Part shown: in pieces, positions 13,164-49,612 of the stretch
How positions within the stretch are numbered: position 1 is the first letter of the stretch
Layout of the letters: every line of letters begins with the position of its first letter
Assembly (NCBI RefSeq): GCF_036365525.1
Contig: NC_090404.1
Location: 4,650,001-4,714,000 of the forward strand
Length of the DNA stretch: 64,000 nucleotides
Source of the DNA: Heterodontus francisci
Lineage: Eukaryota
Direction of reading: 5' to 3'
Notes under the pieces: generated by a model
The model's database searches: none
What the model was told of the DNA's origin: nothing
Seen by the model: the letters and a program-made list of their open reading frames with translations, nothing else
Translations under genes and position numbers: made by a program

Positions 13164-13596
13164 TACTGCGGGGCTCATGGCGCAGAAATGCAAGGTGATG
13201 TTGGAGATCAGGGCATTGCCAATCGCTAGCTCAGTAATCTTGGCATCTTTTGTCAACATAGAAACAAACCAATTAATGATGTCGGTGTTCCTGTGTACAT
13301 TCCCTCCATTAAGATGAAGCATATACTGTGCCGGCTGCCCAGCGTGCTGACTGCACCAGTACATATAAGTGTTAGAATCGTTTCTCGTTTCAAGCTGCAC
13401 AGTCGTGTGATGTTACTTTTCTCTTCAATTGTCATTTCAAGGACAGTCTGTTCAATTGTGTCTTGGTGGTTCAATTATAAGAGAATATCATAGTAATAGT
13501 CATGATTCGAAGCATTATCATCACCACCATCTCAATGAACATAATTATTATCATTTGACCAATAATGAAACCTAGGTTGCAGCAGGGAAAATGCAT
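13164..13596 (-). pseudogene. TCR alpha/delta-type V pseudogene, minus strand, RSS broken
   Basis: Joining ORFs 13253-13474 and 13068-13400 gives DTIEQTVLEMTIEEKSNITRLC/.../NTYMYWCSQHAGQPAQYMLH...LHFCAMSP. Heptamer CGCAGTA, 23-nt spacer, then CR1 sequence in place of the nonamer. Possible leader MHFPCCNLGFII at 13560-13596. Confidence 0.8.
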
Positions 13597-14099
13597 TTTT
13601 GCTTGAAAGGAAACATTACAGTAAAGTAATTTAATGATTATTAACAGTGGCAGCCTGTTCCATATGATGCTTTCTGAGTCTGTAATTCTGCAGTCTGGAA
13701 AATCCGCTGTCTGAGCGAACGCATTTCCTAACCCACTGACCTTCTAACTCAGCCAGTGCCAAACAGGGAACAGCGACAGCAATTTCTCCATAAACACAGG
13801 GGAAGCAAGGCGGCTCAGAGACAGAGCAACTGAAGTTTTGCGGGCGGGGCTGCCGCGGGGGGCAGTGTTGACACACGGAGGATTCATTTGTAAGGAACTG
13901 AATTCATTCATAATGTCGCAATCTGAAATTGTATAACTCTGCCTGTCTCTAAGAGTTGTTTTACTTGCGTAATTATTGCACATTCGCTACAAGCAGGCTT
14001 GCGATATGAAAGACAGAATTATTATATTATTTACAAGTTACCGAAATCTTCATCAGTGAAGTGGGTTAAAACTCGGGTGGGAATGTAACGGTGGGAAAT

Positions 14100-14660
14100 G
14101 GAATGAAATGGTAATAAAAGCAAAATACTGCAGATGTTGGAAATCTAATAGGACAAGGTCACAGAAAATAACTGAGCATCAGGTCATGGACCAAAGGCAG
14201 CGGTATGTTAATGTGTGGTCACATACAAGCGTTACTGCAGAGAGGGTGCACATTGACAGAAAATGAACAGCCCTGACCCCAAGCACAATCATGAAAAAAA
14301 CTGAGTAGGCACAATAGAAACAAACGAAGCAAATTAAAATAAAATAAAAGAAACAAAGAAAAAAGAAAAAAGAAAAAATAACTAAGAATAAAAATTAAAA
14401 GGTGGGTCCGTCATGCACTGAAATTTTTGAACTCATTGTTCAGTCCGGCAGGCTGTAGTGTGCCGAATTGGTAAATGAGATGCTGTTCCTCGAGCTTGTG
14501 TTGATGTTCACTGGAACACTGCAGCCATCCCAGGACAGAGATGTGGGCATGAGAACAGGGGGTGTATTGAAATGGACAGCAACCGGAAGCTCGGGGTCGT
14601 GCTTTCGGACTGAGTGGAGGTGTTCCACAAAGCGGTCACCCAAACTGCGTTTAGTCTCCT
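14100..14660 (-). mobile_element. Penelope-like element fragment
   Basis: GDRFVEHLHSVRKHDPELPVAVHFN (GIY-YIG C-terminus) plus the shared PLE terminal sequence. Confidence 0.78.
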
Positions 14661-14980
14661 CGACATTGGGGACGGAAGTGACTGTTCAGAGAGGTAGAAA
14701 TGGACGGGAGAAGAAATTCCAGCCGGTCGAATAACAACTCGGCACTGTTTCTTCCTTTCCAGTTCTGTAAGGTCGCAGTCTCTATTTCTGAAGTTCAGAC
14801 TGGAACCGCAGAGATAAAACTCTGCCTGACACCGCTTATTGTCCTGATCACAGGTCGGTACCATTAGAAACTCCCTGCAACATTCGCCAATCATCATTAA
14901 ATTTCCCATCTCCAGCTGTGGGTCACTTTCACTTTATTGTACTTCATCTAACATGCTGGGTGTCCGCTGTTTATTTTCAG

Positions 14981-15287
14981 AGATGGGTAACAGAGACTCA
15001 GGGCTCCAGTAAGAACAAGGAGTTGGATCAGTAAATTTAGCAATAATCTATAGTTGTTCTGCATGGTTTCACTTGCCAGCTGTAACCTGTTCTGGTATCA
15101 CCAGTATCCACACCGAGCTCCTTAGTATCTGTTCAGAACCGATAGTCACGAAAATAAGGAAACGGCTCCCGGTTTTGAACACTTCAGCGGTAATCTCAAC
15201 CGGATGCAAGGCACTTTTCTCCTGCCTTTGAAAGGCTTGAGGATCACAGACAACGACTATTATTACTGCACCATAAGACCCACAGTG
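14981..15287 (+). pseudogene. TCR alpha/delta-type V pseudogene (heptamer intact, nonamer lost)
   Basis: TTTTCAG acceptor; NLFWYHQYPHRAP*YLFRTDS...FSGNLNRMQGTFLL...ITDNDYYYCTIRP then CACAGTG at 15281-15287. Confidence 0.85.
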
Positions 15288-15549
15288 AATAAGATTCCTC
15301 GAGCAGAACACAGGTCGGCATTAAGGGTGGGCGCCAAGAAAATACATGGGATTGAATCCCATTTCAGTTTGCACAGAAAATGAAGGGAATATGCACTTTT
15401 TGCGAGCTATTTTCTCAGTCAGTGCTCTCACCGTTGTGAAAGGTAACATTTTTGCAGCATTTGAATCTTGGGTCAAATTCAGATATTCCCAGCTACCTGT
15501 TAACAATGACTTGCAGATCTCTGGGATGAATAACAGGATCGATCTGTCC

Positions 15550-15860
15550 AAGTAACATATCCGTCAGGCCACATCTTGCAAAGTTTCTGGAATTGCATTG
15601 GTAACAAAAGCGGCTGAATGAAATCATCACTTTACTGGTACAAGTTGAACATAAGTGATACCGCACACCGATTTGAAGAGGAGTGGCTACTTATAATGTC
15701 CCTGATAGCCTTAGGACTGTCTCAATGATGTTCATGCTCGGGAGGGTATTCATTCATACCAGGGCTTGAGAGCAAATCGAATTATTTCACCTTAATTAGA
15801 GAGAGATCTATTTCTCATATAACATAAAGATATCCAGTTAGACAACAATGGAGACAATGT
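15550..15860 (+). pseudogene. Possible highly decayed V-domain remnant
   Basis: In-frame C(15594)-x13-W(15636) in NCIGNKSG*MKSSLYWYK; later KDIQLD-like FR3 remnant; no RSS found. Confidence 0.4.
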
Positions 15861-16165
15861 GAGAAAGAAGCAGAAAGACTGCCAACGAGATAAACAACAA
15901 GTGACTGAGACAGGGAGAAAGATGCACAAACGTATTCAGGGAAGAAAGTATTGGTGAGACACAGCAGTAATTAGTCCTCAACGAACCTGATTGGTTCACA
16001 GTTGACATAATATCTGAGCCACCAGCCAACGTAACCCAGAGAAACACCCGTCCGTTTTCCAATAAGTGAATTCTGCCTCGATCAAAGGTCATTCTTCAAT
16101 ATCGGATTGGAAAATTAACAATTAAAGCATTCTACTATTTTCAGTCGAACGCTAAACCAGACAGC

Positions 16166-16632
16166 ATGTGCTTCCTACGTTTCTTACTGATGATACTGGT
16201 CTTGTTGTCCGGTGAACCTATGTTTAAAAGATCAGTGTGTCCTCCATTGGTTATATTCAGTCTTCTAATTTCGACTTCTGTGTATTGTTACAGGAATGAG
16301 TGGTGACGATTCAGTGTCCCTGGACCCACTTGAATTAACGGTTCAGGAAAGACGGGCGGTAATTCTGAACTTTAGTTACACGACAGCGTAGCCTGACTTA
16401 AATCTCTTCTGGTACATGCAGTATCTGAGGGAAGCTCCGAGATTTTACTGAGAACATGCAGCATGGTACAGGGGGATAAATCTCCAGATTTTCCAGATTC
16501 TGGTGAATTGGTCAAAGAAAAGAAAACAGTTCCTTCAAAAGTCGACGGGGCTCTTGTCTCTGACTCTGCGGTGCGTTACTGAGTCCTCCGCCTCACACTG
16601 TCAGAGGAGCGCAGTCTGTCAGTACAAACATG
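16166..16632 (+). pseudogene. TCR alpha/delta-type V pseudogene with leader exon and 23-RSS
   Basis: Leader MCFLRFLLMILVLLS|GTGAAC (16166-16211). V exon from 16294: GMSGDDSVS...LTVQERRAVILNFSYTTA*PDLNLFWYMQYLREAP, frameshift, ...SDSAVRY*VLR. CACACTG-23-ACAAACATG (16594-16632). Confidence 0.88.
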
Positions 16633-18725: not shown

Positions 18726-19071
18726 GACATTGTCGAGGAGACTCCGTTTCACAGACACCGGCTGTAATCACAGTAAGTGAAGGAGACGATGTTCGGTTGC
18801 ACTGCGATTATACAACTACAAGCAGCAGCAATCCTTACCTATTCTGGTACCGTTAGTATCCCAGTGGATACATGGAATATCTGCTGCAAAGAAACAAATA
18901 CAGTGAGGACCGAGAAAGATTTCCAGAGGACCGTTTTTCAGCGTAGCTCGATGATTCGATCCGAACCATCCCGCTGAAAGAATCTAAAACAGAACTGACA
19001 GACTCTGCGGTGTACTACTGCGCACTGAGACCCACAGAGACACAGAGCTGGGCTGATCCTGAACAAAAACT
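18726..19071 (+). pseudogene. TCR alpha/delta-type V pseudogene with near-consensus 23-RSS
   Basis: TGCAG acceptor; GHCRGDSVSQTPAVITVSEGDDVRLHCDYTTTSSSNPYLFWYR*YP...RFSA*LDDSIRTIPL...TDSAVYYCALRP; two stops; CACAGAG-23-ACAAAAACT (19033-19071). Confidence 0.93.
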
Positions 19072-19369
19072 GTCAGAGAGTCTCTCAACATAACAGCAAG
19101 TTAGGGAAACATTGTGATTGGAGGCGAGTGTCTGCATTAGTGATTAGAACTTGTACTGTTAATGTTAATATACAGTTATCCTTTTTCCTGCAATGTTTCA
19201 CTTTTCAAATAATGATCTAATTTCCTTTTAAAAGTAACGATTGAATCTACCTCCACCAACATTTGCAGGCAGTGTCTTATGGAGCATAACATCTCTCTGA
19301 ATAAAGGCAAAATTCTCTTCCTTTTTCCTCTGTTTCTTTTTGCAAGTATCTATGTGTTTTTGCAGATTG

Positions 19370-20845
19370 GCAACACCGGACAGCCCGCTTCTACCTCCTT
19401 CCAAAAATTCACAAACAAGACTGTCCTGGCAGACCCATCGTTTCAGCCTGTTCCTGCCCCACTGAACTTATTTCTTTCTTTCTTGACTCTATCTTTTCTC
19501 AACTGGTCCAGTCTCTTCCCACCTGCATCCGTGACTCTTCTGAAGCCCTACATCGTATTTGACAATTTCCAGTTTCCTGGCCCACACCACCTCCTCTTCA
19601 CGATGGACGTCCAATGTTTCTACACCTCCATCCCCCACCAGGAAAGTCTGAGGGCTCACCGCTTCTTCCTTGAACAGAGGTCTTCGTTATGCCTGCCTTT
19701 TTGTGGGATATGTCGAACATTCCTTGTTCCAGTCCAACTAAGGCCCCCTGACCCAACTCGTTTTCCGGTATATTGATGATTGTATCGGTGCCGTTTCCTG
19801 CACCCGCCCCGAACTGGAAATCATTGTCAACTTTGCTTCTAATTTCCACCCTTCTCTCACCTTTACATGGTCCATCTCCGACACATCCCTTCCCTTCCTT
19901 GACGTCATTGTCTCCATCTCTCGGGATAGGCTGTCTCATATAAGCCCACAGACTCCCATAACTACCTCGACTACACTTCTTCACACCCTACCTCCTGTAA
20001 GGACTTTATTTTATTATCCCAGTTTCTCGGTCTCCAAGGCATCAGTTCCGATGATGCAACCTTCGGCAACAGCGCTTCTGACCTGTTTTCCTCTTTCCTC
20101 AACACAGCATTCCCCGTACCATCCCACACCACCTCCCACGCTCCACCCCCACAGCCACACTGTTGTTGACGGGGCCCTTCAACCATGTCTGGCCTATTTC
20201 CCACACTTCTGCCCGCACCCCTTCCCCTCCATCCCAGAACCGCGACAGGGTTCCCCTTGTCCTCACTTTCCACCTCACCAGCCTCCATATCCAAAGGATC
20301 ATCCTCCACCATTTCTGCCACGTCCAGCGTGATGCCAATACCAAACGCAGCTTCCCCTCCTCTCCCATGTCAGCATTCCGAAGGGATCATTCCCTCCGCG
20401 ACACCCTAGTCAACTCCTCCATTACCCCCAAAGGCCGTCCCCTTCCTATGGCTCCTTCCCATGCAATCACTGGAGGTGCAATACCTGCCCCTTTACCTCC
20501 TCTCTCCTCACTATCCACGGTCCGAAACACTCCATTCAGAAGAAGCAGAGGTTTGCTTGTACTTCCTTCAATGCAGTATACTGTATTCGCTGCTCGCAAT
20601 GCAGTCACCTCTGCACTCGGGAGACCAAAGGCAGATTGGGTGACCGCTTTCGGGAACACCTCTGCTCAGTCTAAAAACATGCCCCGAGCTTCTTGTCGCT
20701 TGTCATTTCAATACCCGCACCCGCTCCCACCCATACAAAGCCCCGCCCCTCCCACCCTCCAACTCCCCCCACACCCCCCCCCCCCCCCACCCCCGCCACT
20801 CTGCTCTCTTGACGACTTCTCTGTCCTGGGCTTGCAGCAGTGTTA
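19370..20845 (+). mobile_element. Penelope-like retroelement (RT + GIY-YIG), decayed; 3' terminal part resumes at about 22660-23030 after a CR1 insertion
   Basis: LLFTMDVQCFYTSIPH, FRYIDD, RVPLVLTFH, YCIRCSQC...RLGDRFREH motifs. Confidence 0.85.
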
Positions 20846-20849
20846 CGTG

Positions 20850-22655
20850 TGCTGTGGACAGAGTGGAACCAGTGGATGGAGCTGACTTAGGTTTCCAGAA
20901 GGCATTTGATAAGGTGCCACATCAAAGGTTATTGCAGAAAATAAAAGCTCATGGTGTGGGGGGTAACATATTGACATGGACAGAAGATTGGTTAGCTAAC
21001 AGCAACAGAGAGTAGGCATAAATAGGTCAGTTTCTGAATGGCAAGATGTAACGAGTGGTGTGTCACAGGGATCTGTGCTGGGGCCTCAACTTTTTACAAT
21101 TTATATAAATGACTTCAATGAAGGGACCGAAGGTATGGTTTCTCAATTTGCTGATGACATAAAAATGGCTGGAAAGTAACTTGCAAAGAGGACATAAGAA
21201 GGCTACAAAGGGATGTAGATAGGTTAAGTGAGTGGGATAAGATCTGGAAAAGTGTGTATAATGTGGGAAAGTGTGAGATTGTCCACTTTGGCAGGAAGAA
21301 TAAAAAAGAAACATGTTATCTAAATGGTGAGAGATTTCCGAGCTGTGAGATGCAGAGGGATCTGGGTGCCCTAGTGCATGAATCGCAAAAGGTTAGTATG
21401 GAGATACAGCACATAATTAGGAAAGCTAATAGAATGTTATCGTTTAATTGAATACAAAAGTAAGCAGGTTATGCTTCAGCTATAAAGGACGTTGGCGTGA
21501 CCACATCTGGATTACTGTGTACAGTAACTGGTTCCTCATTTAAGGAAGGATGTAAATACGTTGGAGGCAGTAGAGAGATGGTTTCCGAGACGAATACCTG
21601 GAATGGATGGGCTTTCTTACCAGGAAAGGTCCTGGGGAAAATTGATATACAGAGAGATTTGGGTGTTCAGGTCCATTGTTCCCTGAAGGTGGCAACGCAG
21701 GTCAATAGAGTGGTCAAGAAGGCATACGGCATGCTTTCCTTCATCGGACGGGGTATTGAGTACAAGAGTTGGCAAGTCATGTTACAGTTGTATAAGACTT
21801 TGGTTCGGCCACATTTGGAATACTGCGTGCAGTTCTGGTCGCCACATTACCAAAAGGATGTGGATGCTTTGGAGAGGGTGCAGAGGAGGTTCACCAGGAT
21901 GTTGCCTGGTATGGAGGGCGCTAGCTATGAAGAGAAGTTGAGTAGATTGGGATTATTTTCATTCGAAAGACGGAGGTTGAGGGGGGACCTGATTGAGGTG
22001 TACAAAATCATGAGAGGTATAGACAGGTTAGATAGCAAGAAGCTTTTTCCCATAGTGGGGGATTCAATTACTAGGGGTCACGAGTTCAAAGTGAGAGGGG
22101 AAAAGTTTAGGGGAGATATGCGTGGAACGTTCTTTACGCAGAGGGTGGTGGGTGCCTGGAACGCGTTGCCAGCGGAGGTGGTAGACGTGGGCATGATAGC
22201 ATCTTTTAAGATGTATCTAGACAGATACATGAATGGGCAGGAAGCAAAGAGATACAGACCCTTAGAAAATAGGCGACATGTTTAGATAGAGGATCTGGAT
22301 CGGCGCAGGCTTGGAGGGCCGAAGGGCCTGTTCCTGTGCAGCAATTTTCTTTGTTCTTTGTTCTTTGAAAGATAGGATAAGGTTGGCTTGCATCAGCTGG
22401 AACTTAGAGGAGTAAGAGGCGACTTGATTGAAACATATAATATCTTGCGGGGGCTTGACAGGGTGGATGTGGAAAGGATGGTTCCCCTTGTGGGAGAATC
22501 TCGAACTGTTACTGTTTAAAATTAAGGTGTCGCCCATTTGAGACCGAGATGAGGAGAATTTTTTTCTCTCAGAGGGTCGGCAGTCTTTTGATTCCTCTTC
22601 CTCAAAAGGCAGTGGAAGCAGAGTCTTTGAATATTATTAAGGTACAGTTAGATAT
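20850..22655 (+). mobile_element. Old CR1 with a young CR1 3' fragment nested at about 21623-22367
   Basis: FQKAFDKVPH RT motif; intact inner ORF 21497-22285 ending in a (TTCTTTG)n tail. Confidence 0.9.
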
Positions 22656-23218
22656 TTTATTTCTTTTCATCATTCGTTTTTTAACCATGTGTCTGCCCAC
22701 TTTTTGTTCGTGTTTGTGCTTTTGGCTTGGGCTGTTCATTATTCTGTCATTTACATCCTCTCTGCACTAATGCTTCGTCCTTCACCACACGATTGGCACT
22801 CTCTTTGCCTTTGCCTTTGCCCCATGACCTCCTTGTCTGTTAATCGTTGACCATCTGTCCTATCAACACTTTCCCTTTTGTTCCCTTTACCCCCAACCCC
22901 GCTTTATTTGTATCTAAGCTATTACATTTCTAAACTTTGCCCATTCTGATGAAAGGTCAGTCACATGAAACGTTAACTCTGCTTCTCTCTCCACAGGTGC
23001 TGAGTGTTTCCATCACGTTTTATTTTTATTAATGTTTTTGTGTCCAGCTATTACTGACCCTCCCTCACACGGGCAACAGTTTCTCTTTATTCACTCTATC
23101 AAAATCCATTTTTTCTTCATATGTCACTCAGTGATCTTTTATTCTTTATATTGTATCCTGCTTTTGTTGGGATTTACTATTCACACATTCTCTAAATGTT
23201 TCTCTCTCTATCCTGCAG

Positions 23219-23556
23219 AGAGCGGCCTTGAAGGCATCACTCATCAACCAAAAGAAAATGTGACAGCTCGGGGAGGAGTGATCTCCACCATGACGAGCTC
23301 CTATACTGAGGTGACGAGAGTTTGCCTGGACTGGTACCGGGATGGTCTCTCCTGGATCCGGAGAAATTCTCATCTACTGCACCGACGGGTTCATTGACAA
23401 TTCGTCTTTTGCAACCCGGCGCTTCACCACATCTTTGGTCAAAAAATACACAGCCATCAGTGAAACAGTTTCACAGGTGGCGGCTGCCAGGAAATACTTC
23501 TGAGTCTTAACACCGCACACAGCCGTGTAGGTTGGGAAAGAGCCTATACATAAACT
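23219..23556 (+). pseudogene. Strongly decayed TCR-type V pseudogene with 23-RSS
   Basis: CCTGCAG acceptor; ITHQPKENVTARGG...SYTE...LDWYR, frameshift, ...RRFTTSL...KYF*VLTP; CACAGCC-23-ACATAAACT (23518-23556). Confidence 0.72.
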
Positions 23557-24339
23557 GAAGATGTAATGACAAGAATACTGTGTCAGTGAACTCGCGGTAT
23601 CATTGTATTTCATGATCGCTACTGAGTGCAATGGTCCAATGGAGAAGCGTAACAATTCTTTCATCCATTTTTCCCTCAGTGTATCATAAACGGACAGATT
23701 GACAATTTTATCGAACATTGTGCACCCAAAGGATTTTATTTTTGTTGACCACAAATTACCGATATCTCGAAAACACTTGGACTCCCAAATTCCTTCATTC
23801 CTCCACAAGAGTCAGCGTCAGAATCAATGACACCATTTCTGGCACAGAATTCCACATTCATACTTCTTACTTTGTGATAAACTTCCTTTTATTTAAAAGT
23901 CAATCTTCTGCTGTTTGAAAGCTCACACTATTGGCTATCTTTATTGTCGCTGTTTCCACAGGGACCAGCAGAGTTTCTTCTTTGCTTTGCATTGTTACAG
24001 TCCATTTTACCAGATTGTGTTGATGAGCGGTCACCTCCTCCTGGGAATGCCCCGCCCACCCACCCCCAACACCTTGGATTCAGTCTCCAATCCTCTCAGT
24101 GATCCTCTCCGCTCAAGAGGACACCTGTCGGGACCTAGGAAGCTCCCGGCAGAAAGGAGGTTCTGTTTGGAATGACTCCGCTATTGACTGGGCAGAGGAG
24201 GGCTGAAGCTCCCGCAATTCACATCAGCTTGCAAACGCCTGGGATGTCGCTGACAGTGACGTTTCAGTCAATGATATTGCATTTGCGAATGTGTGGGTAG
24301 TGAGCCATCTGACACCAACAATCAAGACCATCAAGATTT

Positions 24340-25272
24340 TGAAAGCAAGAAATGCTGGAAATACTCAGTAGGTATGGCAGCATCTGTGGAGAAGAAGCAG
24401 AGTTAATGTTCACTGGAACGGGCAGAGATGTGAGAGCGGGGGGACTGCTGAAATCGCAAGCAACCGGAAGCTCGGGGTCATGCTTTCGGGCTTGGCGGAG
24501 GTGTTCCACAACGCGGTCACCCAGTTTGCGTTTGGTCTCCCCAATGGAGAGGAGACCATATTGTGAGCAGCGAATACAGTATACTACAGTGAAAGAAGTA
24601 TGAGTAAATCGTTGGTTCACCTGAAATGAGTGTTTGGGGCCTTGGATAGTGAGGAGAGAGGAGGTAAAGGGGCAGGTATTACACCTTCTGCGATTGCAGG
24701 GGAAGGTGCCTTGGGAAGGGGACGAGGTGTATTGGTAAATGGAGGAGTGGACCAGGGTGTCGCGGAGGGAATGATCCCTTCAGAATGCAGACATGGGAAG
24801 GGAGGGGAAGATGCATTTGGTAGTGGCATCACGCTGGTCGTGGCGTAAATGGCGCTGGATGATCCCTTTGAATATGGAGACTGATGGGGTGGAAAATGAG
24901 GACAAGGGGAACGCGTTTCTGAGAGGGGGGGGGAAGGAGTGAGGGTAGAGGTGCAGGAAATGGGCCGGACATGGTTGAGGGTCCTGTCAACCACAGAGGG
25001 GGGAAATTCATGGTTGAGGAAAAGGGGAAGTCATATCAGAAGCGCTGTCATGGAAGGTAGCATCGTCAGAGCAGATCCATCGGAGACTGGGACTAGTGTC
25101 TGGGAGAAACTGGGAGAATGGAATGGAGTTCTTACAGGAGGCTGGGTGTGATGAAGTGTAGTCAAGGTGGCTGTGGGAGTCGGTGGGCTTATAATGGATA
25201 TTAGCAGACAGCCTATCCCCAAAGATGGAAACGGAGAAGTCGAGGAAGGGAAGGGCAGTGTCGGAGATGGAC
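24340..25272 (-). mobile_element. Penelope-like element fragment
   Basis: LPFLDFSVSI...HYKPTDSHSHLDYTSSHP; VVYCIRCSQYGLLSIGETKRKLGDR (GIY-YIG). Confidence 0.85.
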
Positions 25273-26029
25273 GGTTTCCCATGATATTTCCTGAATCTGT
25301 AACTCTGCAATGCAGGAGAATCTCTGACGGAGCAGAAATACAAATCCCACTCCCCCTCCACTGCTGATCCAACCAATGACAAGAATGGACCCGCGGCAGC
25401 ACTCCCTCCAATAACACAATCGGGTCAGAGCAAGAGCAGCAAATGGAAGTTGTGGGCGAGGATGCTGCAGACTCAAAATTTGAGTGAAGTGTGAGGCGAC
25501 ACTCTGCTGCACTCGGAACTGATTGAGCGGGAATAGTGTCTGTTGAATCTCCAGAATTCAGTGGCTATTCTCCACCTGCTTACTGTTCAGTTGACTGGGA
25601 AATTTAGAGTGGAAGGAGAATGAAGGTACCAGAATAAGAGAATCTGAGAGCACAGAGTGAGGCCATTCGGCCTATACTCCCGATGCCTCTTTGGAAGAGT
25701 TCACTAATTCATACCTCACCCCCTACATTTTTCGCATTGTCCTGTTTTGTTGTTCATTTTCAAGTATTTTAGAATTCCCTTTCGAAAATTGCTGTTCAAT
25801 CTGCTTCCACCACCCTTTCAAGCAGTACATTCCAAATCTTAACAAATCACCGTGTATTAAATATAACTCAATTTTCCCTGTCATTTTTCAACAACTATTT
25901 TAAATTGGAGGCCTTGGGATACACAATTTTATGCCAGTGGAAACAGTTACGTGCAATCTACTCTATACTGATATATGGAGAACAATCCCAGCTTTCTCTC
26001 GTCCCTCTGCATAAAAGTTCATCATTTTA

Positions 26030-27150
26030 CTTATTCTTTAATCGGAGGTGGGCATCTCTGGTGAGGTCAGTATTTAATACTTGTCTCTACTTGCCTTTAA
26101 TAAGGTGGCGGTGAGCTGCCTTCTTGAACTACCGCAGTCCTGGGGGTGCAGGTTCACCCACAGTGCTATTAGGAAGTGAGCTCCAGGATTTTGATCCAGC
26201 AACAGTGAAGGAACGGCATTTTAGTTTCAAGTCAGGATGGTGTGTGGTTTGGAGGGGAACTTTCAGCTGCTAGCGTTCCTATGTATCTATCGTCCTTGTC
26301 CTTCCAGGTGTTAAAGATCACGGGAATGGAAGGTACTGTCCAAGGCGTCTTGGTGCGTTGCTGCAGTGCATCTTGTAGATGGTACACACTGCTGCTACTG
26401 TGTATGGGTGGTGGAGTGAGTGAATGCTGAAGGTTGTGGATGTGGTGCCGATCAAGCGGGCTGCATTCTCCTGGATGGTGTGGAGCTTCCTGACTGTTGT
26501 TGGAGCTGCACGTCTATAGGCAAATGGAGGGTATTCCATCACACTCCTGACTTATGCATGTAGGCGGTGGACAGGCTTTGTGGAGACAGTAAGTTAGTCA
26601 CTCGCCGCAGAATTCCTAGCCTCTGACCTGCTCTAGTAGCCATAGTACTTTTATGGCTGGTCCAATTCAGTTTCTGGTCAATGATAACCTGCAGAATTAG
26701 GTACGTGGGGGATTCAGCAATGGCAATGGTATTGTACATCAAGGGAAGATGGTTCGATTCTCTTTTGTTTGAGATGGTCATTGCCTGGCACCTGCTTTGT
26801 GTGAAGTTTACCTGCCACTTATCAGCCCAAGCCTGGATGTTGTCCATGTCTTGCTGCATCTGGATACGGACTGCCACAAATGGTGCTGAACATGGTGCAA
26901 TCCTCAGCGAATATACCAATTCTGACCTTATTATTGATGGAAGGTCATTGACGAAGCAGCTGAGGATGGTCTTTCCTAGGACACTACCCTGAGGAACTCA
27001 TGCAGTGATGTCCTGGGACTGAGATGATTGACCTCCAACAACCACAACCATCTTCATTTGTCCAGGTATGACTCCAACCAGCGGAAATGTTCCCCCTTGA
27101 TTCTCATGGGCACCCGTTTTGCTCAGGCTCCTTGATGCTATACTCCTGCT
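26030..27150 (-). mobile_element. LINE (L2/CR1 clade) fragment, same family as 8485-9860
   Basis: QAWADKWQVNF...IDQKLNWTSH; shared 3' UTR. Confidence 0.8.
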
Positions 27151-27529
27151 ACCATTTTGGTTTACTTCCTCTGCACTCGCTTCAATGTCTTGAGATTCTT
27201 TTTCAATAGTGGGGACAGCTGTTAAGCAAACAGGCATATAATTTCCTGTAGTCTGTCACACCCCTTTTTGCGAGTTTTCAATCCTCTCGGAGGTTTCCAG
27301 AATCTAGGGTATTTTGGGAGATTGCAACCAATACATCCACTATCTCTACAGTGACTTCTTTTAAAGGGAGATGGAATGGAGCAAGGTGAGGGGATCCCTC
27401 GGCTGGTGTTCAGTGAGTTCAGGAAGATGGTATCAGAGGGAATGGAGCAGGGAGAGAAGATTCCTGGGGTGATCTTCAGTGAGTTCAAGGAGATGGTGTA
27501 AGAGGGAATAGAGCAGAACAAAGAGGAAG

Positions 27530-34014: not shown

Positions 34015-34146
34015 CTGTAAAAGAGGGATAAAAGAATGAAGCAGAGATTTCGTGGTCTTGGACATTCATCTCAGAACTATGAAATTTTAGAGATTTGTTA
34101 AACAGCTTCATTTAATTTGAAATGTGAGTGGATTGAATATTCTCAC

Positions 34147-37048: not shown

Positions 37049-37076
37049 TAAGAATTGAAATGCAATCGAGAAATTC

Positions 37077-37471
37077 TCATTGACATGAATTAACGGTGTC
37101 CAACAGTGCAAGGGAAATGTTCACAAAACTCGGTTTACCGCTGGATTTATTAACTGTTCTGTTGATGATCTTCAAGGGGATCGCTTCATGTCCCACCACA
37201 CAGGAGTAAGAAGCGCCGCTGGCCCACTCCTCCGCTGCAATGGATAACAGGCTGTAGATGAAGTAGGAGCTCTTGTCGTTCTCCGCCATCACCTCGGTGT
37301 TCTTGTAGTTGCCGGGATTCACCGACTTGTCATTGACAGTCCACTTGACGAAGATCTCTCGGGGGGAGAAACCTCTCACTAAGCAGGTGAGGGAGAGGAA
37401 CCTCTCTGCGGAGACTTCTTCTGCTGGGGGCAGGAGAACAGACACAGACGGTTCCCGCAGATCTTTCCATG
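37077..37471 (-). CDS. IGHM: IgM CH4 exon plus secretory tailpiece
   Basis: [15 protein letters not shown]...[10 protein letters not shown]...YSCVVGHE...[24 protein letters not shown]; N-glycan sequon and penultimate Cys; internal G|GTAAAC donor at 37139/37138 for the membrane form. Confidence 0.97.
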
Positions 37472-37941: not shown

Positions 37942-38247
37942 CTTCCTTGTGGATGGAATCTCTGAGAGGAGTCGGCAGATCCTGATGGCTCACCACACAG
38001 TAGAACACAGCCTCACTCAGCCAGGCTTGTGTCGAGATGTCTACAGTGCTGATCACGCTGTCGGGATCCTCTCCGGGTTGGACGGCAATCTCTGATTTCA
38101 AAGGCTTCTGTTCTTGTGTCCAGGACACGTTGACACCATAAGGAGCATTAGACACGACGCAGGTTAAGGTGACCGTCGCCTCCAGTAAGACCTGTTCTAT
38201 TGATGGTGGCAGTAGTTTAATTACTGGATGATTGCACTCGGAAGAAT
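37942..38247 (-). CDS. IGHM: IgM CH3 exon
   Basis: 306 nt, CAG...GTGAG; [16 protein letters not shown]...LTCVVSN...VSW...[13 protein letters not shown]. Confidence 0.96.
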
Positions 38248-39651: not shown

Positions 39652-39969
39652 CTGGAGATCCGGTGATGTTTCGGCTTTGGGTGGCCGCTTGATGGGAGAC
39701 CTGGCAGGTATAGACCGTGTTGGTGAACCATTCCCGAGCGGGGACTGTCAGCCGACTGGTCGCTGAGAAGTTCCCGTTCGTTTCACAGGCGGGAGAGGTG
39801 ACGAAGCCCGATTCCATGGGATGTCCATCCTTCAACCAACTCACGGTTATTGCTTCTGGATGGAAATCGATGATTGAACACACGACAGTTGCAAATCTGC
39901 TGCTTGTGATTTCTTCACTGGAAGTCTGGGTGAGGATAACAGTTGGATGGACGATGTCACCTTTACAAT
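39652..39969 (-). CDS. IGHM: IgM CH2 exon
   Basis: 318 nt, AG...GTAAG; [14 protein letters not shown]...[20 protein letters not shown]...YTCQVSH. Confidence 0.96.
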
Positions 39970-40181
39970 CTTCAAGAAAAAACATGTTAGACATTTCGAG
40001 AAGAAATTAATAACTAATACAAACTGTTCTTATATTTTAACAGGTTATTTGCATCAAGCAGGCACTAACTGATGTTTCCAGGGGTCTGCACTGTGCACAA
40101 CACTCTAAATGTGGAATAGCCAATGTTCTACACAAGATCCTTCTAGCTTTTCTGTTTTTCCACAGTTTCCACAACACTAAC

Positions 40182-40478
40182 CTGGAATTTCCTTGATCCA
40201 GAGCGACTCTCCGCGTCGAACCTCGCAGTAGATTTTGCTGCTTCCCACCTCTGACTCAGTGATGGTTAATTGGCTGCTCAGGGTGTAGGTTCCCTTCTTG
40301 TTCAGCACTGACGGGTAAGTCTTCAAACCAGTGGTGATCGGTTCTTCACCTTTCTTCCAGGAAACGCTGGTGATTTGGGGGATGTAGTCCATCGCCAAAC
40401 AGCCGTAGGCCATGGAGCCATCGGTGTTGGGTTGTTCACAGGAGCACAGGCCGTAAAGAGTTGGGGGAGACGGTGTCG
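40182..40478 (-). CDS. IGHM: IgM CH1 exon
   Basis: 297 nt, phase 1/1, AG...GTTAGT; [14 protein letters not shown]...[18 protein letters not shown]...[16 protein letters not shown] (C1-set). Confidence 0.96.
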
Positions 40479-42169
40479 CTAGGAAAGAATGGCAAATTGA
40501 ACAAGTTAGACTGTGATTCATGCTTATTAAGTAACCAGACATCTCGCAATTCGACTCCAGCTGGAAACTGATTCCAATATTTTCCGATTAAAACCTTCAT
40601 CCGCATTTGAGCTGCGATCAGTTACATCATTTGGTGTTCATCACCTGTCGGTCCCCTGGTCAGGAACACACCTCTCTTTCAGGACCTGTCACATTACAAA
40701 AGTAAGAGCCTTTTGAAGTTATCTGAATGAGGTATTTTTCATTGGATTAAACTGAAAGAGGAGTTTCCCCACTTTGTTCGGCCAATATTTATTTCTAAAT
40801 CAACAACACTTGGTCAAAAAACATGCGGCATTTAGTTTTTGGAAATTTCTTCTCTGCAAATTGACTGCTGGGTTTCTCCGCACCTCCACCTCCTCCCAGC
40901 AACCCTCCCCACCACCAGCAGACCACCCCGCCCCCCCAACTCCCACTCCCCCTCCAAAAATATAGCAACTACTCTGAAAAAGTGCCATTGGAATGCGTGC
41001 TTGTAAAATGAACTTAATACTGTAAACTTGAATACAAGGCAAATTCATACCATTACTTTCCCATAAAAACCTACAATACATCTGAGCATGCTTATGACCC
41101 TGGGTGATAAATTCATAGACATGATAGCTGAGAAGAAGGCCATTCGGTCCATCAGGCCTGTGAAAGATCACTCCAGCGATCCCGCTGACCTTCCAATTCC
41201 TAATCTTTTCAAAATTTAATTTTATCCAGCTATTTTAGATTCTGTTTACAGCCCTCTTTCTGATAGGACATTCCAGATCCTAACAACCCCCTGTGTAGAA
41301 AAGTAGATTCATACACTCTTCCTTCATTCTTTTGACGCTGATTTTAAATCAGTGTCCTCTACAGACCAACTCACTGATCTGGGCAAATTGGTATCTGAAT
41401 TTCTGTATAAAACATTCATTATTCAAAACACCTCACCAGACTTCATTTTAATCTTCTATGTTCCTATAATAGTGAAGAACTTTTACAATAAATAGTTGAA
41501 GTCTACTTTAAAATATGGACTGAATCATTTCGTACACAGATTTCAGAGGGGAATTTTTACACAGCCTAGTTTCTGGAATTAAAATTTTTAATGACTCGGC
41601 AATGACTCTAAGCTATCACTTTCCTTTTCAGTACTTGAAGATTGTGACTTCTGTTCGATATTATTCGACTGAATGGATTCTCTGGAGTTTGCTTCTCCCT
41701 CCAACTCAAATAATAAACCGAATTAGATCCGATTCGTAAAAATCGGTCATTTGGACTGATGCACTTTAAACGGTCCATTTAACTTTCCAAAGTATCTTCC
41801 CACCCCTCACCAGTGAGAACTGGTGTTGCTGACTGTGTCGTTACAGACACATCTTCTTGCTGCTTGCACCGACCATAATGTGAACATCAGGACTATTCTA
41901 CAAATATTCTACAAATATCTGATATTGTCATTACTTAAACATTATAAATCGAGTGAATATCAGTCGGTTCCATGGAAGGAAGGACAAAAGTTCCTGAAGT
42001 GTTATTGCTGACATGGTCAACTCTCACTTCTGATTTGTGCGGATAATTCAAACACCTGAGGCCTATGGGTCAGATATTGGAAGCTCGCTCACCAATATGA
42101 TGTGAAAGAGGATGCTGGTTATGCTAGCGCAACAGTAGGACATATGGGCTTTCAAATGTCACGTAAGAG

Positions 42170-43230
42170 AACATTCGGAAAATGGAAGCGCATGGATTAA
42201 AGGGGTCTTAGTAACCTGTTCAGGTATAGGAAACAGAGAGTGACGGTGAACCAATGATTTTCTGACTGGAGAGAATTAAGCATTGTGATCCCCCCTTGCG
42301 TTGGTCATAGGGTCATTATTATTTTTGTTAAATATAATGACGTGGTATTGGGTATGGGGCGTAGAATTTCGAAGGTCAAAGACGATACTAAACAAATAGT
42401 GAGCAGGATAGTATCAGAGTTCAGAAGGACATGGGCAGGTGAAATGTTCAGAGACAGAGCAAATACAATTTCATGCGGTTAAATGTGAAGTGCTGGAACT
42501 TTTGAGGGACAACACGGAAAATTAATGCAATCTAAATGGTTGGATATTCAAGGGGTAGAAATGTAGAGGGACCAGAGTTGCATTTTCACAATGTTTTTTT
42601 TCAAGGTCGTTAAGAAAGCGAATGGAATACTTGGTCTTGTAAAATGGAGTACGAATTACAAAAAAACAGGAAGTCATATTAAAGTATTACTAATCACTAA
42701 TTAGGCTGGAGTATTTTTGCACAATTCTGGCCGTCACACTTTCGAAAGGATGTCAAGGCTTTGTGGGGAGTGTCGAGGGAGTTTACCAGACTGATGCCAG
42801 GAATGAGGGAGTTCAGTTATATAGAGTTATTATACGAGATAATTGTTCTCATTAGGCGGTTACCGATTAGTTATGTTCAAAATTATGGGTTGTTTTGATA
42901 GAGCAGATAAGGAAAAACTATTTCCTCTGAAAAGTGGGTCAGTAACAAAATAATTAATTGTCAAAAACGAGCGTGGGCGGGTGGTGGCTGCGGAAAGTGG
43001 TTTCTTTCCTGACAGAGGGGGCTTTTCACAGATGCATCGAACGATTACACCACAAAAGGAGGCCATTCAGCCCGTCGTGTCTGTGCAGCTTCTCTGCAGG
43101 TGCAACCGGACATATCCTTGAAGAACATTAATTTGCGTGGCTATGAGGGAAAAACTGGCTTGTCAGATTAAATTGGAGAGCGCTTTGAGAGCTAACACAG
43201 GCATGACGGGCTGAATGGCCAAATTCTCTG
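42170..43230 (+). mobile_element. Highly decayed CR1 in the J-CH1 intron
   Basis: Colinear similarity to the RT/C-terminal CR1 copies elsewhere in the window. Confidence 0.65.
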
Positions 43231-43959
43231 CGAGAACTTTCCATCATTCTACCCGACTCAGTAGTATTAGTTATCCCCAATTTAATGGGACGAAAAGCTT
43301 CATAAATTTTAACATCTCTGTGACATATATTTTGTTGCTTTTTATAATGAAAGAGGGTTTTTAAAATAAGAGGTTCTGAGCGATTTTATTCAAATGAGTC
43401 AATCAGATACTGTCAGAGACTTAAAGCATATTGTGATTGACATTGATTGCAAGCTCACTGTTTCACTTCAAAAATTTCACAAGAGCTTACTTCAGCGGCT
43501 GTGTGCCCTCTGCTGTGACACAATCCAATAATTGCCTCTCACCAGAGTTTATCACTGACTGTCACCTTTTGAAAATACTTGAACTAAATAATGATTTCAA
43601 ACATGAGAATATCATGATGGTTATTCGGAGCGGGAGTCTCCACTATCTCCATTTAAAGTGCCAAAATAACGTCCAGTCTCCCATCAGATCAGAACAGGCG
43701 TTGGTCTCTGGAGCGTTACAATCACTTCCTGAAACTGTTTGTTCTGAAAGTGCACTCAAAATCAGGCCAATCTCATTCAATAATTATCTGAAACTTAATA
43801 TGTTTAAATATTATTAATTCATTAAAATATGGCCAAGAATTATTATTAAAATCAATTCATGTGCGTTGTTTCATCTGGACAATTGAATAATTTATATTCA
43901 TATATCTGGGTCGAGGACTCACAGCTTATGAGTTTGATGCACATTGAGATTCCTTGAAC

Positions 43960-44360
43960 ACTGTGGGGAAAACATTCTCAGATCAGGTACAGGACAGTTA
44001 AGCTGCAAAGTAAAGATCCATCTATACGGCAATATCATGAGTTGTAATCTCAGACATCGCAAGTGTTAAATTCCGTAGAAAGCTGCCTCTACACTACACT
44101 GTCACTCTGGGTCAGGTCCACCATCTGTTTAATATAAAATAAAAATTCCCTCTACGCTGTCCCATCAAATATATCCAGGACAGGTTCAATCCGGTTTAGA
44201 TACTGAGTAATTCCTCCCTCTACGCTGTCCCCATCAAGTAGTCCCAGGACAGTTACAATATAGATTAAATATACAGTAAAACTTTCTCCGCATTGCCGAA
44301 TCAATCACTCCCAAGGGAGGTACATTACTGATTACAAACTGACCAAATCTCCTTCTACAG
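43960..44360. repeat. ~70-bp minisatellite; inverted copy at 33040-33260
   Basis: Repeated CCCTCTACGCTGTCCCATCAA...CCAGGACAG...AGATAC.GAGTAA units. Confidence 0.7.
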
Positions 44361-47300
44361 TCCGTCTGTTGTGTCTCTGAACTGTTATTTCTGACTGCCA
44401 CAGACTGGAATTATGATCTCATTGCTGAGGCGCCTCATCAAACTTAAAGTCAAACTTTTAGGTTTCTCGGGGGTACAAGTTTCTTAATTAAATGGATCAA
44501 GTTGCACTCCTTGAAATGAAACGAACCAGTCTGTTTGCAACCTGCAGGGAGGATTCCTCGTCCTGACACAGTGAGCAGGCGCACAGCAACAGAACAGACA
44601 CAAACGGTGCAACAATCGGGCTGTCAGCAGTTAGATCTGTTCAATTGTCAATTTCAATGAAGCTGTTTGATTCTAGTTCATCAATTGTCAAATTGTGACC
44701 ACTCCAAATCTGTATACTCTTTGAAATTAAACTGATATTCATTTCAAAAACTCCCTTCGACCTCCAAATGTTTCTCCCTGTCTGTTTACAATCTTAAAAG
44801 CATGTTAGAAAGTTTCGCTTAAAATGAGTACATCAGAAGAATACACATTCAGGAAAATTAGATGTCCATAACCAGAACTCAGTGACAGAGTAAGAATTTA
44901 GAAAATCAGGAGATATGTATCTTGCAAACTGATTACCCACTGGTTTGACACAATTTCATAATTCAATTTTACAAAAAAAATTAGTTGAACCACTGCTCAA
45001 AGTTAATTCATTAAAATCTGCGGTGATACTTGATTGAGCTGAGAACAGCTGAGTAAGAAATGTATTGTTCTCTAAGTTATTGCCAGACATAATGAATTAA
45101 ACTCTCCGATTCTTGAGACTTTGCACTCATTGGAATCCTGGCAAGTATACTATTGAATTGTGGGAGGTCATTTATGTTTAGTGAATTAGCACTATTATAT
45201 TCTAAGCTAATATTCATGTTAGCTGATTTTATACTGCACTTATCATTTATAAATAAATAAAAATAAATAAATTATTTAATATTACTTCAAGACCAGTTTC
45301 TGCCTGGCACCTTGTGAATTAATGGAGTTTTAATTAAGTCATTATGACACTTTATCAGTATTAAATAATTAACGTCATATTAATAGATGAAAACCTTCAG
45401 ACAAATATATTACTTCATGCTGAAATCGAATCACAGTGCAATAATTTAAAATGAACAATAACTTCTAGTCCCGCCCTGCTTTCTCTCTACAAACTTGTAA
45501 ACTGCGCAGGTATCTGAATGCGTTGATATTTTATAAGCTCCTTCCATTCTCAGCGAGTATTTCACACAATGGATTTAGCCTGGCCGGGGTCACATGTCAC
45601 TAACTGGGCTGCAACATGGCCTGTTTGTGAAAGCAGCTCTCCCGTGTTTAAATATCGTTATAAATCTTAACTATATGAGATAAAATATCTAAAACATCCG
45701 GGCACTTTGCGATCAGTAACTATGCTGCCACTATTTAATCACACGATGTTTTTAGATTTTACTCCCGTAATTCACAAATTAATTGCAAAATATATTTTGA
45801 TTTTTATTGAAAGAAGTTCCAAAATGATCACTGCAAAACTGGACGAAAACAACTCTTTCAAATCATCTGTGACATTGAAACCTAATGAGCAAATGTAGCC
45901 GAGATTTGGCGGATCAATTTAATATTTATTAAGAATTAAGCATAACTCTCAGGTATAATCTGTTCTTTATCTATCATTCCATCCTGCGTGCAGCACAACT
46001 ATGGGAGACAGGATGTTGTTACTGAATTCAAAACTAACATTAAACTTTTGTAATTAATTGAATCTGCTTGAATTTCCAGGTGTTATTTGTTTGTCTTTAG
46101 CCTCACGCAGTCTGCAAGTTTCTTCAATTTAAATAAAATCATATGCACAATTCTTTGACTGCCATTGACCTCTTGTCCCAGGAAAATGGTTAATATTAAA
46201 TTAGTGATAATTATCTCACTATCCAACAACAAATGACATTGAAGAAAGAACATGGAAGAACATGAACTCAAAGAATGTAATAACCGGACAGATAGATTGC
46301 ACTGACAAACTGCAATTTACAACGCCTATTTAAGTTGTAAGTAAATACAAGCTGACATTCACCTGTTTTAATCAGGAATATCACAATTAATTTAAAAGCG
46401 CTCATTAACCTGAAAACAGCACTGGAATAAGTACACTCTTATTGAAATAATTTCAAGCACAATTAAAAATAGTCTCCAGTCATAAAGTTTTCCGGTCACG
46501 ACAATTGTGCGCTTGGCACACCAGAACTGTAAAAGACGATTCATGAATAATGAATCGATCTTAATATGAAAGCGTATTTGGTTTATATGAGGACATATTG
46601 CCGCATTATAATTGTTTGAATTGTATTAATTTTACTCTCCAATCTGCAAACCTGCTACTTATTAAGTTTGTAATTGCAGTAACATTTCACGGATTGAAGG
46701 AGCGTTACAAACCATGGCTTAACAGTTCAATCTGCAATTATCATTTAAATTTTTTTAAATGCCTTGAAATATCTTTTTTTTTATTTCTGAAATCTGCCTG
46801 TTATCCGGCTTTCGAATCGTCTTTGAAGCAGTTTCAAACAAATAGAATGTATCCATTTGATCAGAAAACCTGCAGCCGCTCGGTGTCACCCGGGTTCAAC
46901 AAAGCAGAAACGCCAAATAGTTTTACAAATTTTACTTTGTAACACAGAGACACACTCTCCTCAGCAGATAACCTCCAACTCACATCACTGAGGGGCTGAA
47001 TCCCACCTCAGTGCGTTTCAAGGCGAAGCAGCTTAATTCCACAATCACTTTCAGTAGAATCAAATGTAACATCCCAAAAAAAAATCTCAATACAGAATCC
47101 ACCGAGCCTGCCTGTCTCTGAATTACCAAATATATAAAATAATGGCAGCAGATTTGTTAGTACAGAGAGCATGTTTAATAAATTAATATTGATTCTGTAG
47201 CATATTTCATTGATATTGCCTGATATCACTGCATTATTAAAAGTGACGTTATATTAATGTAAATCTGGCCAAAGCTGCAAATTTGTTATTTATGTAATTC

Positions 47301-47833
47301 ATAATTACATCAAAATTTATTGTATTACATATGAGCATTCGTAAGCAGTAGATTGATAGATAGCAATTTAATTACCACAAATAAAAATAGATCAAAATAT
47401 CAGAAGGCTATTTTTGACCACTGAAGCTTTCTGCATAATTTTATTTCAAACATATTTAAAGACTTATTGTTTCTATTCGATCAGAAAACCTGCAGCAACT
47501 AGATGTCACCCAGATTAAACATTGCAGAAACGTCAAACGGTTTAAATACCAAACAGTTTGGTATTTAAAGTAGCCCAAACACTCAGTCTCATCAACAAAT
47601 AAACACCAAATCACATCAATCTGGAGCTGAATCCTTCAACAGTACCGTGTGTAAAGAAACCATTAAGTTCTTTAATCCCTTAGCAGCAGAATCACATAAA
47701 ACATTGCAACAAATTCGCAATATAGAATCCACCAAATCCACTTTTCAGTGAACGAATGTATCATGACAAAAAACAGAAATATAAAATTAAAAACACAAAT
47801 AAAACAGTTAATGAATAAATGTATGTTTCTTAC

Positions 47834-47881
47834 CTGCAGTCACCGTCACCATGGTCCCTTGTCCCCAGTACTCAAGATAGT
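47834..47881 (-). CDS. IGHJ: IgH J segment (YLEYWGQGTMVTVTA)
   Basis: WGQG motif, GTAAG donor; RSS at 47882-47920 (CACAGTG-23-ACAATAACC on +). Confidence 0.97.
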
Positions 47882-48246
47882 CACAGTGTTACATTCCCTG
47901 GGCTGGGTCACACAATAACCGGCTCTGCACAGAATAGTGAGAAATCCATTATTATTTTAAATATCCACACTCCAGAGGCAAAATAAAATCTTGATGGTTC
48001 TTTGTAAAATTATAACTGCGTTAATAATTCTTTTCACTCTTTATAAATTTCCCTGATGTTTTATATTTCACACAGTAACATATCAGCAATTATTGAAATC
48101 ACTAACTGATGAATGAATAATTAATCCATTTATCCATAATAAACCGTGCTAGGAGGACAGTGCTGGACACAAATAGTACTTCACTGTATATATAGTTGGA
48201 TTGTTAAAGCGAGCACTGACCCAGACTCATCAATTAGTGCTGAGGG

Positions 48247-48315
48247 AGTTTTTGTATTGACAGTAACTGCTGTGCCACCCAGTATAGCACAGTGAGACAA
48301 ACCGTGTCAAATACT
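48247..48315 (-). other. IGHD: IgH D2 segment (CTATACTGGGTGG, 48275-48287) with 12/12 RSS
   Basis: On +: AGTTTTTGT-12-TGCTGTG [D] CACAGTG-12-TCAAATACT. Confidence 0.95.
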
Positions 48316-48626
48316 GTGGCGGACTGTTAACTGTAAAATACAGAGTTTACATTTCACAGCGATCTCAAAAACATGATTGCGATCCCCCTAAGAGGACATC
48401 AGTGAGAAAGTTCAGTTTATACCAGTCATTATATTTATAAAGAGATCGGAATATTTCTGAACCATCTGTGCTGATTTAGCGTGACAGTCAATATTAATAA
48501 AGCAGGAGACTTCTATACAATTTTACAAATCTATATTGTATTTCCCCAATTTTATATTTAATCCTCATTGTTTACGGACCATCTGCTGCGTTAGTGATCG
48601 CTGGTTTGAGCAAACTCCCTGTCTGG

Positions 48627-48707
48627 GGTTTTTGTATGAAGAACTCGCTCTGTACAGCACCGTGACCCACTGTAGTACCCACAGTGACACTAACCTGCAC
48701 AAATACT
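48627..48707 (-). other. IGHD: IgH D1 segment (GGTACTACAGTGGGT, 48665-48679) with 5' 12-RSS and 3' 22-RSS
   Basis: On +: GGTTTTTGT-22-CACCGTG [D] CACAGTG-12-ACAAATACT. Confidence 0.95.
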
Positions 48708-49097
48708 GCACTCACTGTCTGTTCAGTACTGCCTCCCAATATTCACTTCAAATAAAAATTCACTTCTGATCTAATTCAGAATATATCCAAATGTTTACAC
48801 CATGCAGTAGGAATTGAACCCAGCTCCAAGTAACTCCCTCCAGATATCAGTCACATTAAAACTAGCATCTTATCCAGATTTGCAATTGCTGATACTATTA
48901 ATATTAAAAATCAGCACAGCCAAAATTACTCATCAGTACTTCGGTTCGTGTCTTAGATTTATACCATTGAATTTTCACTGTGCTACTTGTGTGAGAGACG
49001 GTCTATGGCCTGGTTCTGAACTCTGCCGTTAACATTGTATTTAATAAAATTACTGACCGTCAGTTTATGATGGAAGTTATCGAATTCTCTCTCCATA

Positions 49098-49136
49098 TGT
49101 TCTTGTACATGTCCAGCCCTGGTTCCTCTCACTGTG
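49098..49136 (-). promoter_or_regulatory. VH 3' recombination signal (23-RSS)
   Basis: CACAGTG + 23 nt + ACAAGAACA. Confidence 0.95.
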
Positions 49137-49441
49137 GTCTGTTGCACAGTAATATATAGCGGTGTCTTCAGTCTTCAGGCTCTTCATGTCCAAAGCGAAA
49201 ATGTTTTTTGAAGTGTCTTTGGACGCAGTAAATCGATCTTTAATCCCTGGGGCGTAGTAGTTGCTGGATGAACTAGCATAGCTAACCAGCCACTCCAGCC
49301 CCTGTCCGGGAACCTGCCGGACCCAGCTCATCCAGGTGCTGCCAAGAGTGAACCCGCTGGTTTTACAGGTCAGTCTCAGGGAGCCTCCGGGTTTCCCGGT
49401 CTCTGCCTCTGGCTGAGTCAACACGATATCCGAATGGACAC
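49137..49441 (-). CDS. IGHV: IgM heavy-chain V exon, intact and unrearranged
   Basis: TTTTACAG acceptor; [25 protein letters not shown]...[12 protein letters not shown]...[11 protein letters not shown]; both Cys and the Trp present, no stops. Confidence 0.98.
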
Positions 49442-49566
49442 CTGTAAAAAATATCAAAAACCCCGAGAATTAATCCTGGTGAAATGATTCCTGACTCTGT
49501 AATATTTCAGAGAAAGACTATCACTGATCCAATTAGTGAGAGACTCGGATAGTAAAAACTACTCAC

Positions 49567-49612
49567 GGGATAAGAAAACCAGCAACAGACTGAGAGAAAT
49601 CGCCAACCTCAT
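49567..49612 (-). CDS. IGHV: IgM VH leader exon (MRLAISLSLLLVFLS)
   Basis: ATG at 49612, hydrophobic 15-codon signal peptide plus 1 nt, then GTGAGT donor; 46 nt, phase 1. Confidence 0.95.

Follow-up and report, generated by a model that had tools for sequence, protein, structure and literature searches.

The stretch of DNA analysed here (contig NC_090404.1, positions 4,650,001 to 4,714,000 of the forward strand; 64,000 nucleotides in all, hereafter called the window) carries an intact immunoglobulin M (IgM) heavy chain minicluster on the minus strand and, downstream of it, five remnants of T cell receptor (TCR) V genes, alpha/delta in type, four of them firm and the fifth (Ve) probable, each of which is disrupted by stops and/or a frameshift. 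We infer, with a probability of roughly 85 %, that the window belongs to the elasmobranch antigen-receptor complex (AgRC), in which immunoglobulin heavy chain (IgH) miniclusters are interspersed with TCR alpha/delta gene segments, and that it holds one IgM minicluster and five dead TCR alpha/delta V segments of this complex. In the AgRC, clusters encoding IgM, IgW, and IgNAR lie in linkage with TCR alpha/delta, and V exons of TCR alpha/delta type have been reported between IgH clusters in four sharks and rays (Flajnik et al., Sci Adv 2025, PMC12227049). The TCR alpha/delta D-J-C genes, UrIg2, and PSMB5 are further members of that chromosome region.

The V remnants, here called Va to Ve, were located by tblastn with intact V proteins obtained from a protein-library search, which marked four places at E values of 3e-9 to 1e-44 and the fifth at a looser threshold. 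Their positions, lesions, and adjoining recombination signal sequences (RSSs; a 23-RSS has a spacer of 23 nt) are as follows:

13170-13462, minus strand: Va, with one frameshift near 13395; it ends in FCAMSP and its RSS is destroyed.
14991-15287 (V 14991-15281), plus strand: Vb, with two stops; it has the motif LFWY and ends in CTIRP, followed by the heptamer CACAGTG, the nonamer being lost.
16302-16632 (V 16302-16591), plus strand: Vc, with two stops, a frameshift near 16440, and the first cysteine changed to phenylalanine; a weak 23-RSS follows (CACACTG-23-ACAAACATG).
18737-19071 (V 18737-19033), plus strand: Vd, with two TAG stops, one after WYR and one after RFSA; it has the motifs HCDYTT and LFWY and ends in YYCALRP, followed by a good 23-RSS (CACAGAG-23-ACAAAAACT, 19033-19071).
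23236-23556 (V 23236-23512), plus strand: Ve, with a frameshift at 23347, the first cysteine lost, and a stop at the second cysteine; a weak 23-RSS follows (CACAGCC-23-ACATAAACT, 23518-23556).

With stops and/or frameshifts in every case, none of the five has the features of a functional segment and all are pseudogenes, as a preceding interpretation of the window (the sequence-only reading) had maintained. Its count of at least five V segments stands firmly for Va to Vd and with probability for Ve. The 23-RSS that it noted is in good state in Vd and can be recognised in Vc and Ve; Vb retains the heptamer only, and Va has lost the signal. The RSS remnant of Ve stands at the expected position, for which we put the probability of a chance occurrence at ~7e-4 (our own estimate and not the output of a tool). 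The RSS of Vd is probably still whole. The closest Chiloscyllium V gene models (P0014 and P0156) read through the RSS, and their residues nearly match those of Vd past its coding end; CACAGAG is therefore probably the native heptamer of the V subfamily to which Vd belongs. By the same comparison, this heptamer, the nonamer, and a large part of the spacer seem to be conserved across shark orders within that subfamily. Beyond the listed places and the VH of the IgM cluster, no further V remnant was found at E < 0.01 when the TCR-like profile was run against the window's complete set of 2,111 stop-free six-frame segments. A sixth V candidate at ~5.9 kb was rejected, as it sits in the tail of open reading frame (ORF) 2 of a long interspersed nuclear element (LINE).

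Several lines of evidence assign the remnants to the TCR alpha/delta type and set them apart from IgH. When scored against a TCR-like and an IgH profile, respectively, Vd reached 142.6 and 32.3 bits, Vb 54.7 and 21.7 bits, Va 46.3 and 11.4 bits, and Ve 18.7 and 6.0 bits, while Vc scored 52.7 bits with the former and gave no hit with the latter; for the VH of the window, the corresponding values were 50.7 and 189.9 bits. The PDB matches of the first 39 residues of Vd are almost all TCR alpha chains along with a few delta chains (best E 2.4e-9). In a library of 1.8 billion proteins, the same piece shares 76 % identity with a V of Chiloscyllium punctatum and 62 % with the V of a Stegostoma gene model named "T cell receptor alpha chain", the remaining relatives of which are all TCR alpha. 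A profile pooled from Va, Vb, Vc, and Ve, that is, without Vd, retrieved ~43 TCR alpha chains, ~15 VHs, and one VNAR among the top 60 distinct PDB sequences, and no light chain was found among these 60, even though antibodies far outnumber TCRs in this database. A PDB search with the framework region 1 (FR1) piece of Vc alone gave no useful match.

In a maximum-likelihood tree, the 28 IgH Vs come together in a single clade (SH-aLRT 100, stem length 1.76); the VH of the window lies inside it, among the shark IGHVs (SH-aLRT 100), and all five remnants lie outside. Vd groups with the Stegostoma and Chiloscyllium Vs (support 91), on the side of the shark TCR alpha Vs. Given their position outside of the IGHV clade, the remnants are therefore not akin to TAILVs, the IgH-like Vs that have been described within the TCR delta locus (refs 26, 27, and 33 of PMC12227049). 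Profile scores, PDB matches, and exclusion from the IGHV clade bear out the earlier assignment, and on these comparisons the remnants belong to the TCR alpha/delta and not to the IgH type, alpha and delta being inseparable here.

Four of the five Vs (Vb, Vc, Vd, and Ve) point to the 3' end of the IgM cluster, and Va has the same orientation as the cluster. The distance from the end of the first transmembrane (TM) exon of the cluster (TM1; 34147) amounts to 10.6 kb for Ve and ~21 kb for Va. The sole run of Ns in the window lies at 2820-2952, so that no gap intervenes between the Vs and the cluster; the sequence-only reading, which had placed them 10-21 kb apart on ungapped sequence, was accurate in this respect.

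The IgM minicluster extends over ~15.5 kb (~49.6-34.1 kb) and is germline-unjoined. It was delineated by a six-frame inspection, an RSS scan, and direct reading, its exons being searched one by one. It comprises a split leader, one VH, two D segments, and one JH with canonical RSSs, four Cmu exons, the secretory tail, and TM1:

49567-49612, minus strand: leader exon 1 (46 nt, phase 1), with ATG at 49612-49610 and donor GT at 49566-49565; read directly.
49137-49441, minus strand: VH exon (end of the leader plus V region), with the C-terminal residues YYCATD and a Pfam V-set match (8.5e-16).
49098-49136, minus strand: 23-RSS of VH (CACAGTG-23-ACAAGAACA).
48627-48707, minus strand: D1 with its RSSs (coding 48679-48665), flanked 5' by a 12-RSS and 3' by a 22-RSS (CACGGTG-22-ACAAAAACC).
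48247-48315, minus strand: D2 with its RSSs (coding 48287-48275), a 12-RSS on each side; read directly.
47834-47920, minus strand: JH with its 23-RSS (coding 47881-47834), the motif WGQGT, and a GT donor.
40182-40478, minus strand: Cmu1 (Pfam C1-set, 5.5e-11).
39652-39969, minus strand: Cmu2 (Pfam C1-set, 3.3e-20).
37942-38247, minus strand: Cmu3 (Pfam C1-set, 4.7e-9).
37077-37471, minus strand: Cmu4 with the secretory tailpiece and stop (Pfam C1-set, 2e-21).
34147-34274, minus strand: TM1, an acidic stretch and a hydrophobic membrane segment, with AG acceptor and GT donor.

Leader exon 1 joins the V exon in frame across a GT..AG intron, D1 and D2 are free of stops in all frames, and the order V-D1-D2-J obeys the 12/23 rule (VH with 23; D1 with 12 and 22; D2 with 12 and 12; JH with 23). 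Compared with a Heterodontus francisci immunoglobulin heavy chain V region, the VH exon shows 87 % identity, and compared with the VHs of other sharks 72-78 %, which suggests that the window probably comes from a fifth species outside of the four published ones. All four Cmu exons are open, have AG/GT borders, and are in phase 1. Solved IgM heavy constant mu chains match Cmu4 and its tailpiece over residues 4-121 (E ~1e-46), and the isotype is therefore mu. The Cmu4 stop is followed by poly(A) signals at 37048 and 37035, and a cryptic donor for the membrane form (G/GTAAA) lies within Cmu4 at 37139/37138; the phase of TM1, for which no Pfam match was obtained, is compatible with this donor. No lesion was found in any recognised part of the minicluster. 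With open frames, C1-set domains, the mu tailpiece, and TM1 in place, the earlier description of an intact IgM cluster with secretory and TM exons is confirmed in these parts.

From this anatomy, the way in which the cluster would be used can be proposed. As is known for clusters of this kind, RAG would join VH (23) to D1 (12/22), D2 (12/12), and JH (23), all by deletion within the cluster, the rearranged transcript would be spliced to Cmu1-4, and it would end either at the secretory tail or, when the cryptic Cmu4 donor is used, at the TM exons. The dead V segments have no coding function.

Two side observations concern the cluster. A lone RSS-like site (CACAGTG, 24-nt spacer, ACACGAACC) occurs at 48943-48982 (minus strand), in the interval from the VH RSS to D1 and ~150 bp 3' of the VH heptamer, and no adjoining coding segment is recognisable; the site could be what is left of a lost segment, or it could match by chance. 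In addition, the sequencing runs X3, X6, and X7 (116-160 million letters each, from the same sample) contain 41-52 % of the sampled words of 40100-49700, so that their share for the V-to-Cmu1 stretch equals that in far larger DNA runs. None of the listed runs is recorded as RNA; these words could derive from RNA with unspliced IgM transcripts or could be common to many IgM clusters.

Outside of the IgM cluster and the V pieces, the window consists mostly of reverse-transcriptase ORFs and repeats, which is also the case for the spacer between Vd and the cluster:

19100-34100, no strand assigned: spacer (with Ve inside), composed of CR1/L2-like LINE pieces and other repeats.

At least 57 % of this spacer is repetitive (8.5 kb or more, out of 15.0 kb, recurs within the window), and it includes an esterase ORF1 (28606-28950) and a reverse transcriptase (31524-32009) of a CR1/L2-like LINE. 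With such insertions, the original distance between the Vs and the cluster was therefore shorter than it is now. Three plus-strand segments (21623-22367, 29314-30189, and 58346-59217) are 3' ends of one LINE family and 94-97 % identical to each other, which marks them as recent insertions. Older copies of the same family (66-77 % identity) are present at 1-1645, 6120-7608, and 31980-32737. Another interspersed repeat has copies at 14468-14909 and 20163-20885 (plus strand) and at 24264-25512 (minus strand), and forms an inverted pair with 81-87 % complementarity (20290-20685 versus 24475-24871). The ORFs of this repeat gave no Pfam match; their motif presumably resembles the nuclease domain of Penelope-like elements. 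Furthermore, a 27-bp minisatellite of ~18 copies (69 % matches) at 63019-63502 on the plus strand translates to a repeated DPVSVYITL-like motif, and similar open frames are scattered over ~2 kb (61.7-63.5 kb).

How the remnants came to lie beside the cluster can be approached through their ages. The end branches in the maximum-likelihood tree measure 0.16 for Vd, 1.25 for Vc, and 2.1-3.6 for Va, Vb, and Ve (Ve 3.6), and the Vs have therefore died at very different times. This would make them leftovers of a prolonged turnover, by birth and death, among the TCR V genes around the IgM clusters, with retroelement insertions later having lengthened the spacer. A different history, in which the IgM cluster and the convergent TCR Vs were segmentally duplicated together as a module and the Vs are mere passengers that were dead before or soon after copying, could account for the very old pseudogenes Va, Vb, and Ve. 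However, Vd, with its short end branch and intact RSS, is young and died long after the rest, and a local turnover therefore fits better than one shared fossil set; we regard the co-amplified module as a doubtful, though not a far-fetched, account. An extended form of the module account, in which a repeated duplication module increased the number of IgM clusters in this lineage by segmental copying inside the TCR alpha/delta V array and Vd offers a silencing route through its RSS, strikes us as distinctly unlikely. The Vd 23-RSS faces the cluster with the same polarity as that of JH. On this reading, the former could capture the 3' 12-RSS of D2 and delete J-Cmu, that is, act as a built-in means of silencing a cluster, and such silencing would be a selective reason for the decay of most neighbouring RSSs. 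A further, speculative possibility is that VH might be joined in cis to D-J segments of TCR delta that lie megabases away.

The juxtaposition itself might be questioned on the ground that an assembly misjoin has brought the cluster and the V remnants together from different places via the LINE copies of the spacer, and the 94-97 % identical pieces at 21.6-22.4 and 29.3-30.2 kb (and also at 58.3-59.2 kb) would lend themselves to such an error. However, there is no N gap, the near-identical repeat pieces measure only ~0.75-0.9 kb and are thus short for modern long reads, and the same juxtaposition was published for four species (PMC12227049), which renders a misjoin highly improbable. Only slightly less improbable is that the remnants are in fact decayed immunoglobulin light chain (IgL), TCR beta/gamma, TAILV, or non-rearranging V-set exons. 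In favour of such an origin, Va has IgL-lambda, TRBV, and IGKV clusters as its neighbours in the Atlas, the FR3 pieces of Vb and Vd taken alone match antibody as well as TCR chains, and some IgL clusters were reported within the same complex (PMC12227049). On the other hand, the PDB lists are dominated by TCR alpha despite the many more antibodies there, the TCR-like profile beats the IgH profile by 12-110 bits for all five, all five fall outside of the IGHV clade, and RSS remnants follow four of the five, three with a recognisable 23-nt spacer, which argues for Vs of the rearranging type.

A number of points nevertheless weigh against the interpretation of the window as a piece of the AgRC with five dead TCR alpha/delta Vs. 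Va, when searched alone in the Atlas, proved to be a V-set domain but could not be given a chain type, its top matches being the light chain and TRBV clusters mentioned above. The phylogeny does place all remnants outside of the IGHV clade and Vd with the TCR alpha Vs, yet its comparison panel consists of TCR alpha-like and IgH Vs only, without shark IgL, TCR beta (TRBV), or TCR gamma (TRGV) sequences; the exclusion of these three classes rests on PDB hit lists of mostly mammalian chains. As the TCR-like panel was recruited with the Vd piece, it moreover favours Vd. Ve is a weak member of the set, reaching its score with the TCR-like profile after frame correction, and it is supported neither by the PDB search nor by the Atlas search, the latter having returned chance-type SpoIIE matches. 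No leader exon was found for the V remnants (none was recognised for Vd), and the very short TM2 was not located in the window. Contiguity across 19-34 kb was judged from the assembly. Finally, although the IgM cluster looks ordinary and intact, it can be called fully functional only by extrapolation from its sequence.

The arrangement is best appreciated against the known systems. Like the AgRC, the window combines TCR alpha/delta-type V exons with an IgH minicluster, here with no gap in between; the pseudogene state, orientation, and RSS state of the V exons, in contrast, are not mentioned in PMC12227049. The linkage as such, which the sequence-only reading had assumed to be novel, was thus already published in 2025, and its view that most IgH elements in the vicinity of shark TCR delta are defective finds no support in that source. 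Further literature searching produced no more specific prior description of the arrangement. The general idea of IgH-TCR alpha/delta linkage, however, is consistent with the literature, and the interpretation that had been built on it, a mixed Ig/TCR alpha/delta locus, is partly supported and right in kind.

The classical IgM minicluster of Heterodontus (horn shark) has the order VH-D1-D2-JH-Cmu. The cluster of the window resembles it in having VH, two Ds, JH, and four Cmu exons plus TM, with RSS spacers of 23, 12-22, 12-12, and 23, all unjoined, and differs from it in nothing notable except that a lone RSS-like site is additionally present after VH and before D1.

In the nurse shark, TAILVs and chimeric chains of Ig and TCR delta parts are known (refs 26, 27, and 33 of PMC12227049). 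As in that case, Ig and TCR delta elements are close to each other on one chromosome, but the window presents the reverse situation, namely dead TCR-like Vs beside an IgH cluster. Inverted Vs downstream of a C gene have been described for the TCR delta and TCR beta loci (PMC12227049), and the Vs of the window with a 23-RSS are likewise located 3' of a constant region and directed back to it. Here, by contrast, Cmu is the constant region, and the Vs, all of them pseudogenes, would not be expected to be used by inversion.

Since the mixing of Ig and TCR alpha/delta genes was already known, the window represents a useful annotation and not a new principle. It adds a base-level example in which the TCR Vs between clusters are all pseudogenes of very different ages, and contributes the detail that four of the five Vs converge on the IgM cluster and that one of them retains a native-looking RSS. 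More generally, the linkage of IgH and TCR alpha/delta genes bears on the origin of antigen-receptor loci from one complex, as well as on the formation of Ig-TCR delta chimeras and on the hypermutation of shark TCRs.

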